A stretch of DNA of 64,000 nucleotides from contig CM007989.1 of NCBI GenBank assembly GCA_002189035.1, positions 1,984,001 through 2,048,000 on the forward strand. The letters run 5' to 3'. The DNA comes from Utricularia gibba. Its lineage: Eukaryota; Plantae; Magnoliophyta. This document shows positions 36,739 to 52,200 of this stretch, piece after piece. Within the stretch, counting starts at the first letter, position 1. Each line of letters starts with the position of its first letter. The position numbers and the translations under genes are program-made. Under the pieces are notes generated by a model that saw only the letters and a list, made by a program, of their open reading frames with translations, ran no database searches and was not told the DNA's origin.

Positions 36739-38152
36739 ATGGCACAAGAGCAGTTGGTTCTCCGCGGTACTATGCGTGCCCATACGGATTGGGTCACCGC
36801 CATCGCGACTCCAATTGACAATTCCGATATGGTGGTCACCGCCTCTAGAGACAAATCCATCGTTTTGTGGGCTTTAACCAAGGAAGACCGCACATACGGG
36901 GTTCCTCGCCGCCGATTGACCGGTCATTCCCACTTTGTTCAGGACGTCGTTCTCTCTTCCGACGGCCAGTTTGCACTTTCCGGCTCCTGGGATGGTGATC
37001 TCCGCCTGTGGGATTTACAAACTGGTAAAACTGCTCGTCGCTTCTCGGGTCACACCAAGGACGTTCTCTCCGTCGCCTTTTCCGCTGACAACCGTCAGAT
37101 AGTGTCTGGATCGCGCGACAAGACTATCAAGCTCTGGAACACGCTTGGAGAATGCAAGTACACTATACAGGACCAAGACGCGCATTCTGATTGGGTTTCA
37201 TGCGTGAGGTTCTCTCCCAATACGCTGTTGCCAACCATTGTCTCAGGCTCGTGGGATAACACCGTCAAGATCTGGAATCTGACGAATTGCAAGCTGCGGT
37301 CGACTTTAGCCGGACACTCTGCCCATGTGAATGCTGTGTCCGTCTCACCTGATGGTTCTCTCTGCGCAAGTGGTGGGAAAGATGGTGTTATTCTTCTGTG
37401 GGACTTGGCCGAAGGAAAGAGGTTGTATTCATTGGACGCTGGCTCTGTCACTCACGCCCTCTGCTTCAGCCCCAACAGGTACTGGCTGTGTGCTGCAACT
37501 GAGTCCAGCATCAAGATTTGGGATTTAGAGAGCAAGAGTGTTGTTGTCGATCTCAAAGTCGATTTGAAACAAGAGAGTGAAATGGCTGCCGAAGAAACCG
37601 GTACCAGGAAACACAAGGTACTCACTCAACGTATCACTATCATTTTTACGTCATCATTTTTTTGGTAATTGTGATTAATCTACTAATCATGTGTGGTATA
37701 ATGCTATTCTCTCCTCAACTTTCATAACTTGTTACTATTATTGCCCTGAACAGCTAGGCATTTCTAATATTGTGTTTAACCGCGCATATATCTCGAGTTT
37801 ATCTTCTTTAACCCATATTTTTTACCTTGTGGGTATCTGAAAGCTGAGAACTTTTTCGTGTTTTTTGGCTGTTAAACGTGTCACCTACAATTATTTACTG
37901 TGAATGTGCGGTGTGAGCCACTCTTCCCAAAATCCATTTCTTTCAGTAGTGATGCGGAATGTTGGCCCTGATATTCCAGATCATCAGATGATCTGGAACA
38001 TCAGATGATGTTTCAGTGCAGAAATATCATTGTTTGTGTATTGTCTGCAGGTGATCTACTGCACGAGCCTCAACTGGAGTGCGGATGGGAGCACCCTCTT
38101 CAGTGGGTACACAGATGGTGTTATTCGCGTTTGGGGTATCGGCCGCTACTAG
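36739..38152 (+). CDS. RACK1: RACK1 (40S-associated WD40 scaffold), 2 exons (36739-37617, 38051-38152)
   Basis: [25 protein letters not shown], seven WD repeats, [11 protein letters not shown], ends [10 protein letters not shown]. Confidence 0.97.
37974..38012. repeat. Nested inverted repeats in RACK1 intron
   Basis: TTCCAGATCATC-A-GATGATCTGGAA (12-bp arms) overlapping AACATCA-GA-TGATGTT; CATCAGATGAT occurs twice 17 nt apart. Confidence 0.9.
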
Positions 38153-47532: not shown

Positions 47533-48772
47533 TCAAATGAAACTACATCCTCTAGCTTTCCTCACATTTTGTGTCTGCATCAGCTCTCTCAACTGCTCTG
47601 CTTCACTCCACTTCCCTCCCAGTGCATAGAGATCAGCAATGAGTGAGTAAAGGCCACCTCCGGTCTCTGGTCTCACTACCTTCATCACCTCATTGATCAC
47701 ATTTTCAGCCATTTCCAACTGTCTGTGCATTTTGCACCATGTCAAGAAGGAACCCCAGATAGCAGCATTTGGATCAAATGGCATCGTTCGGATGACCCGG
47801 AGGGCCTCCACGAGCATCCCCGCCTTTCCTAGCAGCTCCACCATGCAGCCATAATGCTCAACTCCAGGCAGTAGTCCATACTGCTGCTGCATCATCCTGA
47901 AATACTTGCGCCCCTCGTCCACAAGCATAGCCTGCACACAGGCGTTCAGAATCCCAGTGAAGGTTAACTCATTGGGCGTCACCCCATCCTCAATCATCTT
48001 GTCAAAGAGCAGCAGAAGCTCTCTGCTAAAGCCATGATGTGCTGCACCACATATCAAGGCTGTCCATGTAGCCACATTGGTGTTTCTCATCAGGTTGAAT
48101 ACCAACTGTGCCATCTTCAGATGTCCGCATTTCGCGTACATGCTGACGAGACAAGTACCGTGTTCCATGTCTAGCTCCCAGCCGTTCCGAATTGAGAAGG
48201 CGTGCACAGATTTTCCCAGCACCAAACCTATCAATCCCATTTTGCTGCAACTTGCTAATATTGATCCCAAGGTGAAGTGATCAGGCTTTAGGTGCACATC
48301 TTTGGCATTCCTTGTGGTTAGCATTTGGCGGAAAAGGGCGAAGCCTTGGGGAAAAGGGAATGGTTCAAGCAAGCCGAGATAATCGCCGACCAAGATGCAA
48401 TATTCCTCTGAGGCATAGCATCGAACACCTTCCGGGCAGCTGCGATATCACCTTGTCTGGCGTACCCAGTGATCATCACATTCCAGCTGACTGCGTTCCG
48501 AACAGACATTTCGGAGAACAATGTGCAGGCCTCCTTGAAGCATTTCAGCGCGTAGGCAGAAAGCAGACAAGTGGCTACATAAACATTGTGGCAAAACCCA
48601 AGTTTGAGAAGATGGGCATGGAGGTGGTGTAGGACGCCGACGCTGCAAGACAACTGACTGCAAGATTTGAGAGCATGGAGGACGCTGAATGAGTCGACAG
48701 AAGCCGAATTGCGATGCGCCCGACAGTAGAGCTGCAGGCCTCGAGAGGTAAAGAAGCTGAGGCGGATTTCAT
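47533..48772 (-). CDS. PLS-class PPR protein with E domain, no DYW, intronless; frameshift at 48348-48351, start uncertain
   Basis: RNAVSWNVMITGY, PDHFTLGSILASC, VTPNELTFTGILNAC, PGVEHYGCMVELLGKAG, MPFDPNAAIWGSFL, ends RKARGCSFI*. Nearest plausible ATG (48772) is out of frame by one base. Confidence 0.85.
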
Positions 48773-48863
48773 CGTGGAAGCATCCCGGCGTTCGGAAGGC
48801 CAAAGGAAGCGGATTATCACATGAGGGTGCCCGAAGGAGCAACAGAAATGGAGGCGTGAACAC

Positions 48864-48965
48864 TTCACAGGCAACACGTCCTCCGTTTAGAACAATCAGA
48901 TCAGAACATCGATCTGCAATGATCAGCCATTTCCTTATAGAGCTCCAGATTTGAACGAAGCCTGG
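48864..48965 (-). repeat. Diverged direct copy of SKI2 segment 49903-50037 (intron end, 3' splice site, exon start)
   Basis: Identical blocks of 19 nt (48864-48882 = 49903-49921), 14 nt (48890-48903 = 49929-49942) and 30 nt (48905-48934 = 49969-49998), plus an 11/12 match (48954-48965 vs 50026-50037). Confidence 0.92.
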
Positions 48966-49220
48966 AAAGAAGACTGCTTTTCTTGCAAGGTGAAGTTTCA
49001 ACAGAAAAATGACAGTTGAGAAGAACTCCAAGAGCCTTTCCTGATTGATAATACTCCATGGACGCTACGGTTCAGTATTTGTGCTAAAACTTGATGGATG
49101 ATACAGCAACTAACTCTCACGAGCTCACTACTGCTCCCTGAATGATTCTTCAATGGAATGTGGCATTCTTCTACAGCCAGTTCTCTTGGAACTGCAAATC
49201 CATGGTCAAAGCAGAGAGCA

Positions 49221-52200
49221 TCAAATACCAGTGATGTACAAGCTTGCAGCGAAAACTACATCTCTCTTTATTGAATTAGAGGCAGCTTCCATCTTCTTGT
49301 AGAGTGCAGGATTACCCATGATCGCTGCGGCATTTCTAAACTCACGGCATGTTTCGTCCAACCTCATTATCGTTCGAACAATCATCCCTTCAGACACATC
49401 AGTCAGTTCGCATATGTCTGCAAATGGAGTCCCCTGCAAATTTACAACACCAGGGGTTTAGATTCTGTTTTCAGTGAGAAAATGGTCACTCTGAGTTTCA
49501 AAAAGTAGACCTTTGCCCATTCATAAACGACTTCAACAAGGCCAAACTTGAGGTTCTCCTGTGCATAATCCTGAGGGACAACTTGGAGGTTGAACTTCGC
49601 CTGTAGTTCTCCCAGTCGTATAGCTGAATCATACAATCTGAAACTCCAAAGATAATTGAAGAGTGGGATGTGAGAAATGATCATAGGGATGAGCTAATGG
49701 GGGAACAAAAAACAAGATCTATACGCAAGACTGGTTACCTCTTTTTGGCTTGAGACAACCTTGGAGTAAGAGAAGGTTCAGAAGCGTTCTTCTGCTGAAA
49801 GACAAAGGCAGACATTATAGCAACTGCTTCTTCTGGTTCTAGATCATTAAACTGATTCTCGAACAAGCACTCCGTGCATATCAGCTCCTCTCCGGAATTC
49901 ATTTCACAGGCAACACGTCCTTTGATTTGAACAATCAGATCACTATCTATGCATCCAATCTCCTTTAAAACATCGATCTGCAATGATCAGCCATTTCCAG
50001 ACAGAACATCAGTTAGCATCCGGGTAACAAAGCCTGGGATGTCTTTCTCTACTATTTACCCAAGCAGAATATTCGGTCAACATACCCGACCCTGAAATTC
50101 TGGCATCTGCTGAAGTGCCTCATCTGACATCTGAAATTTGAGAGTGTCCACTTCATCTTTATGCTTCTTCAACTCCTGAGCTAATTTCAAGTGTTCCTCA
50201 AGTTTGATGCAACCACTGCACTTGCTTTGCGACATCTTCTGCAACAAGTAAGTCAACTTATGGTAGGCCTCAACAACCTTGCTGTCCTTTAATTTCAAAT
50301 CTGCCAAGATGTTTTGGTGAATCATAAGCATTCAGAAATTGAGCATGTATATTGTGACTTGAAGAGCTGCAGCAGAAGCAGAATCCAAGTCTTAACATAG
50401 AATGAAAATTTATTAAGCAAGCCCATAGAAACATATTGAAGCACAGGATCAGCGATTCTAATTATTGATAGAAGCATCCACTCCTTTGAAGTGTTGCGAA
50501 GAGAACATGACCCCAGACCCACAACAGTTCAGTGAATACCTTTTAGTGGATCTAAAGCTGCTGGGTATTTATTACCATCTGGTTTTAGCTTCAATAGTTG
50601 CTGCACCACTTGTGAGAAGGCACCAGCACTAACATCTTCAAGAAGCCGACCCTGGTCTACTTTTATTGTGGAAGCACATATAGATAAAAACTCAGTGCTT
50701 GGGGTCCCTCTCACCTCATAACTCATACCAGCCACGGAACCATAGTGAGGCAAGTCTAAATTGACAACACCAGTTCTTTTGCGGGATCTGCCTGATGAGA
50801 AATATTCCTCATCCATTCCGCGTTTCGATTTTGGAACTAACACTTGGAAATCAATCGCTTTTGTATCTCTAATTTCAGAAGGAGCTTTGGCAACAGGAGT
50901 CCCCGGGGTCAGCACCAGCACTATATATTGCTTATAATTAGCAGGTGGTGCTTTCACAATAACGCCTAGTAAATGATCTTGGGCCTGCAACATTATTCAA
51001 AAAGGTATATGATTTAATGCAGAGAGCGCTGTAATGAATGATAATGGAAAACTCAAGGACATCAAAGACATCAGCTTCAACACAAAGCTCCTGGATATTT
51101 TTTAAAGACATGATTGAATGCAGAAAACGCTCTAAGGCATCAATCAACATAAAGCTCAACTAAAAATCATCTACTGCACATTGCTATATCTGACCATCCT
51201 CTTTCCATCTGCACAGTGCATGTATAAAAATGTGAAAATTACCCGAACCTACATGTTTTGCAGACAGAAACTTTGACCAAGGAACATAGTAAGTATTTTA
51301 AAGCAAGACTCTGATTGTACGCAAACAAGGAAATAAAAGCAAATCATGTCCAGCATAAGCAGTGTGCCTGACATGTTCATGCATAACTCACCGAATTAGA
51401 TTTCACAACCACCACTCTTCCCGGAGTTAGGTAATGATGTGCAGCAGGAGACAGCATGACAGCTTCACTGATAATTCTTCTCAAGTTTTCTGCTTCTGCA
51501 TGTAACTCATAATATTCCTCAATCGCTGGTTCACCTTTTATGCACCTAAAGAACATTACGAAATAACTTATCATTAGCCTGCTATACATAGTAAGAGTTT
51601 AAAGCCAGGGGAATTGGAGACAGCAGCAGGACAGGGAGATTTCAGCAATTCGTAGTGTGGAGGATTCCAGTGAAATATGGTATATACAAGAGATTACTTC
51701 AACGACTGGATCACTGCACCAAAAACGTACAAGACCGCTGGAATGTTTTAAAAGAAACAGTTCCAAAAAAAAAACATTCATCCAAATAGTCATCAAGGTT
51801 TTAGCAAGATAGATGTGGAAAGTTTTTCATAACTTATCAGTATCTGTCACATCAAACATCTGTCAAAACTATGGTATTGCGTACACTATCCTAATGCCAA
51901 GGCATTTATCCGTGCAATGAAAGAAAAGTGACAAGATAGTTGCAATGAGAGCATCCAAAAATTCGTCATTTTCGTTGCACAGGATACAAAAGCAAACTGA
52001 AATATGTAATAAAATATCCATGCCAGTATGGTCTTCCAAAGAATAGCAAGGTATGTAAATTAAAAAAAAAGGACAAGTTATGAAATCTAAAAATGAAAAG
52101 TTACAACTTCCACAGCATGAAGAACAATCACTTGAAATACTTTCACATAGAAGCAAAAAGACTTGTGCATGCTTTTGGTACAGAATACGCTTACTCAATA

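Follow-up and report, generated by a model that had tools for sequence, protein, structure and literature searches.

The short spacer between the SKI2 gene and the PPR gene downstream of it carries a degenerate copy of an internal piece of SKI2 (Table 1), which is probably the scar of a DNA double-strand break repaired by deletion and templated insertion (“filler DNA”). The copy, 105 nt long, consists of the tail of a SKI2 intron, its AG acceptor, and the start of the following exon, and is found ~1 kb downstream of its source, placed exactly on the expected start of the PPR gene.

Table 1. Positions in the window (the whole 64-kb stretch of DNA analyzed) of the SKI2-derived copy, its source, and neighboring features
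Feature	Position	Strand	Remarks
Copy (patch)	48861..48965	-	105 nt, from SKI2 intron tail and exon start; unique in the window
Copy, intron-derived half	48914..48965	-	Ends in the copied CAG; AG at 48915-48914; 43/51 identical, with 9-nt and 1-nt gaps
Copy, exon-derived half	48861..48913	-	Reads IDVLI in the SKI2 frame, then TGA at 48898-48896
Source of copy in SKI2	49900..50037	-	Intron tail 50037-49978, exon start 49977-49900 (start of DSHCT domain)
Real SKI2 intron, 108 nt, phase 0	49978..50085	-	GT at 50085-50084, AG at 49979-49978; predicted from GT-AG and reading frame
SKI2 stop codon (TGA)	49221..49223	-	Last exon encodes the DSHCT C-terminus
AAGAAA hexamer	48979..48984	-	The 620 nt past the SKI2 stop contain no other hexamer within one mismatch of AATAAA; pattern only
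GTG codon, PPR frame	48861..48863	-	Aligned with the SKI2 source ATG (Met of GRVACEM) at 49902-49900
E-class PPR gene (“At5g66520-like” in orthologues)	47533..48860	-	Readable in two frames; no in-frame ATG at the 5′ end
C-run with 1-nt PPR frameshift relative to all orthologues	48348..48351	-	From comparison with orthologues

A minus-strand reading, a repeat finder, and a gapped local alignment agree on the copy and on its source, bearing out the initial annotation of a same-strand SKI2 duplicate between these two genes. The two are identical at 91 of 104 aligned bases (BLASTN E=7e-10). The alignment of 48965-48861 with 50037-49900 consists of blocks of 12, 4, 44, 1, and 43 nt, with 13 differing positions and three indels: a 9-nt gap, a 1-nt gap, and the replacement of 26 nt of the source (49968-49943) by a single C at 48904. 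Within it, a 30-nt core (48905-48934, corresponding to 49969-49998) is identical; it includes 21 nt of intron, with the CAG, and 9 nt of exon, so that the intron-derived half of the copy matches the end of the real intron perfectly over its last 21 nt. Both the 30-nt identity and the 26-to-1-nt replacement had been reported beforehand, and both are seen in the gapped alignment. The core is absent elsewhere in the window, and none of 100 shuffled controls had any match to it. When the 64-kb window was compared with itself, the copy was the sole dispersed repeat at E<1e-4. Its template, collinear with it and in the same orientation, is found at a distance of ~1040-1064 nt. Because 52 nt of SKI2 intron sequence are included, the copy was made from DNA, as first proposed, and a retrocopy is ruled out.

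The source gene functions in RNA decay and encodes a Ski2-like RNA helicase with Ski2_N, arch/beta-barrel, and DSHCT domains, identified by Pfam in searches run exon by exon, on separate exon ORFs. The source exon matches positions 3-71 of the DSHCT profile, and aligns with Mtr4/Ski2 structures in the PDB. Across the real intron the SKI2 frame reads ...FQGR / IDVLK...; an attempt to place this junction by PDB numbering gave spurious RecA matches only, the upstream exon being too divergent. The last three real SKI2 introns are 108, 101, and 77 nt long. Past the SKI2 stop codon, the copy begins after 255 nt and the copied AG is reached after 307 nt; the spacing between SKI2 and the PPR gene, on the same strand, is ~360 nt.

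On the PPR side, recognizable homology (FTPPF...) resumes one codon after the GTG codon, right past the last base of the copy. The orthologous PPR proteins begin ML.KL.TP(R/P)L, while the PPR frame in the window reads ...GRVACEVFTPPFLL. In the protein alignment, over an N-terminus that is poorly conserved, the start methionine of the orthologues aligns inside the copy, and their first ~5 codons (ML.KL) have no counterpart, the copy being found in their place. There is no ATG in the PPR frame from 49031 to well inside the repeats. From this arrangement we infer that the beginning of the PPR gene was deleted when the copy was inserted.

Identity between copy and source is patchy. The longest perfect runs are 30, 19, and 14 nt, with mismatches clustered between them (200,000 permutations: P=0.008 for the top three runs summing to at least 63 nt, P=0.06 for a longest run of at least 30 nt). 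This clustering suggests patchwork copying, although it could alternatively come from selection or from multi-base mutations. The initial annotation held that the intronic blocks were better preserved than the exon, and took this as a possible sign that the splice signal is under selection, or that the copy is recent. Over aligned positions the reverse is the case, with 84% identity in the intron-derived half vs. 91% (48/53) in the exon-derived half; the 26-nt loss is confined to the latter. Of the three long perfect runs, two are exonic, and preferential conservation of the splice signal is not apparent. The scrambled stretch at 48935-48953 could not be matched to a second template, an 11-nt near-match to PPR sequence at 48727-48737 being at chance level only, and 48650-49221 contains no further SKI2-derived pieces.

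The following sequence of events would account for this pattern. The very short SKI2-PPR spacer would have suffered a break, repaired with loss of the PPR 5′ leader and first few codons, and the gap filled with a patch copied from DNA ~1 kb upstream, by chance spanning a SKI2 intron/exon boundary. The route may have been polymerase-theta-mediated or synthesis-dependent repair, as in plant end-joining, in which case the 9- and 25-nt skips, and the perfect runs alternating with scrambled stretches, would reflect template slippage or switching. Templated insertions in experimental polymerase-theta-mediated repair are typically short, and the 105-nt patch is longer than these. Junction microhomology amounts to at most 2-3 nt (TG/ATG) at the distal end and CC at the proximal end, indistinguishable from chance. 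The deletion and the junctions are putative, placed by protein alignment over the poorly conserved N-terminus.

Such an event has precedents. Plant end-joining leaves templated insertions (“fillers”) together with deletions at its junctions. These insertions, which often match sequence in the flank of the break, have been attributed to repeated rounds of microhomology-primed extension and release (PMC10923293). The present window, from a long-branched member of the Lamiales, has a compact organization and few repeats; for compact genomes of this type, microdeletions arising in break repair have been suggested as a driver (PMC4972453).

Relatives were sought by word-index protein searches with the PPR N-terminal ORF, the SKI2 last exon, and the PPR C-terminal ORF, together with cluster listing. 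As to same-species or close-relative sequences, the highest identities obtained were 90% for the SKI2 exon and 65% for PPR. Exact look-ups of the 52-aa ORF over the copy and of the last-exon ORF found no same-species match, and an exact 30-mer scan of metagenome contigs found no same-species or close-relative sequence. In neither Perilla nor Orobanche does SKI2 occur less than 10 kb from the PPR orthologue. Downstream of SKI2, the nearest Logan contigs show no PPR gene over 0.6-2.1 kb, and the closest sequences found are 84% identical, in exons only, with PPR not adjacent.

As a second possibility, the patch might have been co-opted by the PPR gene: once its own start was lost, the SKI2 exon fragment would have supplied an in-frame ATG and a leader, making the patch, now or until recently, the PPR 5′ UTR and first codon; the ATG would later have mutated to GTG, unless GTG itself serves as a weak start. 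This seems rather unlikely, though several features of the junction agree with it. Past the 26-nt loss, the exon-derived half retains the SKI2 “GRVACE” frame, which coincides with the PPR frame; the junction is in frame, and the ORF is open through the patch. The SKI2 source ATG aligns with the codon directly before the resumed PPR homology, and the sequence directly past the patch is rich in C and T, as in a leader (AT 43%, C 36%). This codon is now GTG, however, and the last two matching bases, which follow a mismatch, may be there by chance (1/16), while the prior for an in-frame junction is 1/3. The PPR gene also carries the 1-nt frameshift at 48348-48351, and protein searches found no PPR transcript or same-species PPR protein. 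Its identity to orthologues is 57-65%, where these are 72-86% identical among themselves; this divergence is compatible with decay, but the whole lineage is fast-evolving as well.

A third possibility, which we consider improbable, is that the copy is what deletions have left of a once larger SKI2 3′-end duplication, or a fragment captured by a transposon of the Pack-MULE or Helitron type. Intron and exon sequence are both present, as they are in captured fragments, and the genome would be deletion-prone if it is of the compact bladderwort type (PMC4972453). Against this, the neighborhood of the copy contains no more SKI2-derived fragments, and no transposon ends, terminal inverted repeats, or target-site duplications were found in 48700-49240. 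The window has no other dispersed repeats, and the sequences flanking the copy are the 3′ region of SKI2 and the coding sequence of PPR.

The initial annotation raised a possible regulatory role: SKI2 transcripts would read through the poly(A) site, letting the donor at 50085 bypass the real acceptor and three exons to join the copied acceptor at 48914, giving a regulated, unproductive isoform without the DSHCT domain. Its positions for the donor GT, the ends of the real and copied AG, and the TGA are all correct, as is its frame arithmetic: this junction would read ...FQGR/IDVLI*, with a premature TGA, and since the DSHCT domain begins in the source exon, the whole of it would be missing. The context of the copied acceptor from -21 to +9 is identical to that of the working SKI2 acceptor, the upstream T content is similar (33% over the 100 nt upstream of the copied acceptor vs. 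29%), and the ~360-nt same-strand spacing of the two genes makes read-through conceivable.

Other features make a splicing switch of this kind very unlikely. The donor and the real acceptor are 108 nt apart, whereas use of the copied one would require an intron of 1172 nt, compared with 77-108 nt for local introns. The CTAAC branch-point motif of the source intron, at -36 from the AG, has not been retained, the copy being diverged and missing bases around this position; the sole YURAY-type match in the copy is a CTGAT ~10 nt from the AG, short of the 18-50 nt taken as the usable range. This is a weak test, plant branch points being loosely defined. The only poly(A)-signal-like hexamer, AAGAAA, is ~15 nt ahead of the copy and ~65 nt upstream of the copied AG. 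No donor-like GT (at least 6/8 agreement with the donor consensus) was found between the SKI2 stop region and the copy, and, as described above, the splice signal shows no preferential conservation. The copied acceptor, beyond the probable end of the SKI2 mRNA and stripped of its branch-point motif, is most likely a silent by-product; given the identity from -21 to +9, it may nonetheless see some use. The RNA fold z-score (-1.97) is unremarkable, and a search for RNA families gave only a chance-level U4 match elsewhere.

Among the last SKI2 codons, at 49228-49227, is a weak phase-1 GT that, if joined to the copied acceptor, would be in frame with the PPR ORF. It is highly improbable that a read-through SKI2 pre-mRNA is spliced via the copied acceptor, whether to SKI2 lacking DSHCT from 50085 or to an in-frame SKI2-PPR chimera from 49228-49227; if it were, a repair scar would have become a new splice connection between neighboring genes. 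Finally, that the copy is an assembly artefact is hardly credible: two single-base oddities in the PPR gene (the C-run frameshift, and GTG for an expected ATG) could be read errors, but 13 differing positions and three indels distinguish the two copies, each of which has unique flanks, while assembly duplications are normally near-identical.

The copy has at present no bearing on the regulation of SKI2 or on RNA decay. If it is a repair scar, it would indicate that, where spacers are a few hundred bases long, repair of a single break can leave the beginning of a gene overwritten by sequence copied from its neighbor. Such repair may disable the overwritten gene or give it a new head, scattering intact splice signals as by-products. 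Scars of this kind would be raw material for new exons, new starts, and chimeric transcripts, and may help to explain gene loss in compact plant genomes.

Several known systems invite comparison. Like the capture of gene fragments by Pack-MULEs and Helitrons, the event moved an intron-containing fragment to a new place; unlike them, it left no element ends, and involved only ~105 nt, 1 kb from the source. The copy also resembles alternative 3′ splice sites or terminal exons arising by duplication, in having, farther down the same strand, a second intact AG preceded by the same 21 nt, and it resembles unproductive splicing switches in that the copied site, if used, would give a premature stop. 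It differs from switches created by splice-site duplication in its place outside the coding region, 307 nt past the stop codon and beyond the sole poly(A)-signal-like hexamer, and in being without a branch-point motif and broken in frame, rather than a tandem in-frame duplicate of an exon.

The closest resemblance is to plant filler DNA, or templated insertions: a short stretch derived from nearby DNA on the same chromosome, at a site apparently missing sequence. The patchy identity and internal skips are as expected of repeated priming, extension, and release (PMC10923293), and the context, a compact genome thought to have been shaped by deletion-biased repair (PMC4972453), is also alike. The differences are that the template is ~1 kb away, not in the immediate flank of the break, and that junction microhomology is not demonstrable. 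As it stands, the copy is probably a natural example of a known process.

The sequence abutting the 5' side of the PPR gene next to SKI2, a Ski2-like RNA helicase gene, is best read as the scar of a double-strand-break repair that copied a piece of SKI2. The initial annotation had described a DNA-level copy of a SKI2 splice-acceptor cassette between the two genes, and this is correct: minus-strand reading, a repeat finder and gapped local alignment agree on a same-strand copy. The coordinates then proposed for the donor and both acceptors are right, as is the SKI2 frame past the copied AG (IDVLI, then TGA). Copy and source align in blocks of 12, 4, 44, 1, and 43 nt (91 of 104 aligned bases identical; BLASTN E=7e-10), with a 9-nt gap, a 1-nt gap, and 26 nt of source reduced to a single C. 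They share a 30-nt core, made up of 21 nt of intron ending in CAG and the first 9 exon bases, which has no third site in the window and was matched in 0 of 100 shuffles. At E<1e-4, a search of the 64-kb window against itself finds no dispersed repeat but this pair; a 37-nt near-perfect palindrome (92% self-complementary) is its one other match. The window as a whole is gene-dense, compact, and almost without dispersed repeats.

Features discussed, in window coordinates
Feature	Coordinates	Strand
SKI2	about 58.4 kb down to TGA 49223-49221	-
SKI2 donor GT	50085-50084	-
Source of copy	50037-49900	-
Real AG end	49978	-
Source segment lost from copy	49968-49943	-
Source ATG	49902-49900	-
SKI2 last exon	49224-49436	-
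Weak GT	49228-49227	-
PPR frame, open	49031 to 48318	-
AAGAAA	48984-48979	-
Copy	48965-48861	-
Scrambled 19 nt	48935-48953	-
Hairpin	48897-48916	-
Copied AG end	48914	-
Single C replacing lost segment	48904	-
TGA past copied AG	48898-48896	-
GTG in copy	48863-48861	-
PPR gene (possible pseudogene)	47533-48863	-
Putative paired frameshifts	48745-48775	-
C-run with one-base shift	48351-48348	-
Palindrome	37968-38004	

The SKI2 exon ORFs, searched one by one rather than as a joined spliced protein, match Ski2_N, the Mtr4-like beta-barrel, and DSHCT; the source exon, aligned with Mtr4 and Ski2 structures, falls where the DSHCT region begins. The last exon, for which protein searches gave no match above 90%, has four lineage-private substitutions (M24, P43, S55, and V60, exon numbering) at sites where 88 plant sequences show at least 95% conservation, which fits a generally fast-evolving lineage. 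Sequence comparisons show a Lamiales affinity with a long branch; neither exact look-ups nor scanning metagenome contigs for a 30-mer gave a match.

The neighboring gene, on the same strand, is an E-class PPR with orthologues of 420-480 aa across eudicots, named 'At5g66520-like'. Its best matches are from Lamiales (57-65% identity; none of its ORFs had a match above 65% in protein searches), while the orthologues are 72-86% identical to one another. The expected PPR start follows the SKI2 stop by only ~360 nt, and the copy occupies positions 255-360 nt past that stop, directly abutting the PPR reading frame. Orthologues begin ML.KL.TP(R/P)L..., followed by a conserved ...FNSW.FAIR.ASSSSPLKALQLY segment; the frame in the window reads ...GGRVACEVFTPPFLLLL...LAFR...LQLY. 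Within the copy, the V of RVACE aligns with the orthologues' Met, and PPR homology resumes with FTPPF in the codon right after the copy's last base; the copy therefore stands in the place of the PPR leader and first codons.

Past the 26-nt loss, the copy retains the SKI2 frame (GRVACE) and runs on into the PPR frame, ending in GTG where the source has ATG (the Met of GRVACEM). The PPR gene could conceivably have taken over the patch for a new leader and start codon, but this is improbable: the frame has no ATG between its upstream end and the repeats, and a one-base shift follows in a C-run. The new point, as we read the sequence, is that the patch falls exactly where the PPR gene should begin and in its frame, and that this gene has no ATG and is frameshifted. 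Recent pseudogenization could explain this, as could single-base errors in the assembly. Between ...HDEIR and LQLY..., another frame (KSASASLPLEA) is nearer to the orthologues' NASSSSPLKA than is the PPR frame (LSFFTSRG), suggesting a pair of one-base frameshifts in the N-terminal region that compensate each other. The Orobanche gracilis orthologue (L004:10001-11443), annotated as two adjacent ORFs of 185 and 282 aa, may also be interrupted, in a parasitic plant. In Perilla and Orobanche the PPR orthologue has no SKI2 within 10 kb, and in the nearest SKI2 contigs (84% identity, exons only) the 0.6-2.1 kb downstream contain no PPR, so that the adjacency appears to be missing from the other species compared.

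Under the repair reading, a break would have led to loss of DNA from the SKI2-PPR spacer and from the beginning of the PPR gene, and a patch of ~105 nt, templated ~1 kb upstream, would have been inserted there. The 13 mismatches are clustered, with perfect runs of 30, 19, and 14 nt and scrambled stretches between (200,000 permutations: P=0.008 for the top three runs summing to at least 63, P=0.06 for a longest run of at least 30), a pattern that fits patchwork copying; a search for a second template for the scrambled 19 nt found none. Through the 26-nt loss, CAGATCG and TGATCTG came to form a hairpin of 7 pairs with a 6-nt loop. The same arms stand 32 nt apart in the source, and a template hairpin may have promoted the skip. 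Age estimates rest on general plant mutation rates: very roughly, the event may be young if the perfect runs are original patches (1 mismatch in about 75 nt), or some millions of years old if the mismatches reflect uniform decay (12.5%).

A SKI2 unproductive-splicing switch using the copied acceptor, as initially proposed, finds no support and, judged from the sequence, is unlikely. The copied acceptor does match the working one from -21 to +9, with similar upstream T content, but the real intron's CTAAC, 36 nt ahead of the AG, is missing; splicing from the SKI2 donor would require an intron of 1172 nt that passes over three well-defined exons, where the last three introns measure 108, 101, and 77 nt; AAGAAA, which within 620 nt past the SKI2 stop is the sole hexamer one mismatch away from AATAAA, precedes the copied acceptor; and no GT with at least a 6/8 donor-consensus match lies between the SKI2 stop region and the copy. 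A weak GT (5/8) in the last SKI2 codons would join the PPR ORF in frame, an unsupported one-in-three coincidence. Nor is the intron better preserved than the exon, as had been thought: 43/51 intron-derived and 48/53 exon-derived bases are identical, the 26-nt exon loss apart. With two of the three long runs in the exon, the mismatch pattern gives no indication that the splice signal was under selection.

Unlikely alternatives are a larger duplication, since eroded, or capture by a transposon (a search gave neither further fragments nor element ends) and misassembly (copy and source differ at 13 sites and three indels). A search for known structured RNAs found none.

Fillers, templated insertions at end-joining repair junctions, accompany deletions in plants and are often templated by flanking DNA; they are attributed to repeated cycles of microhomology-primed extension and release (PMC10923293). 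Deletion-biased break repair is a proposed path to compact genomes such as that of bladderwort, where a promoter or spacer normally measures a few hundred bases (PMC4972453). On the repair reading, the patch on the PPR start is another instance of this known kind of event.
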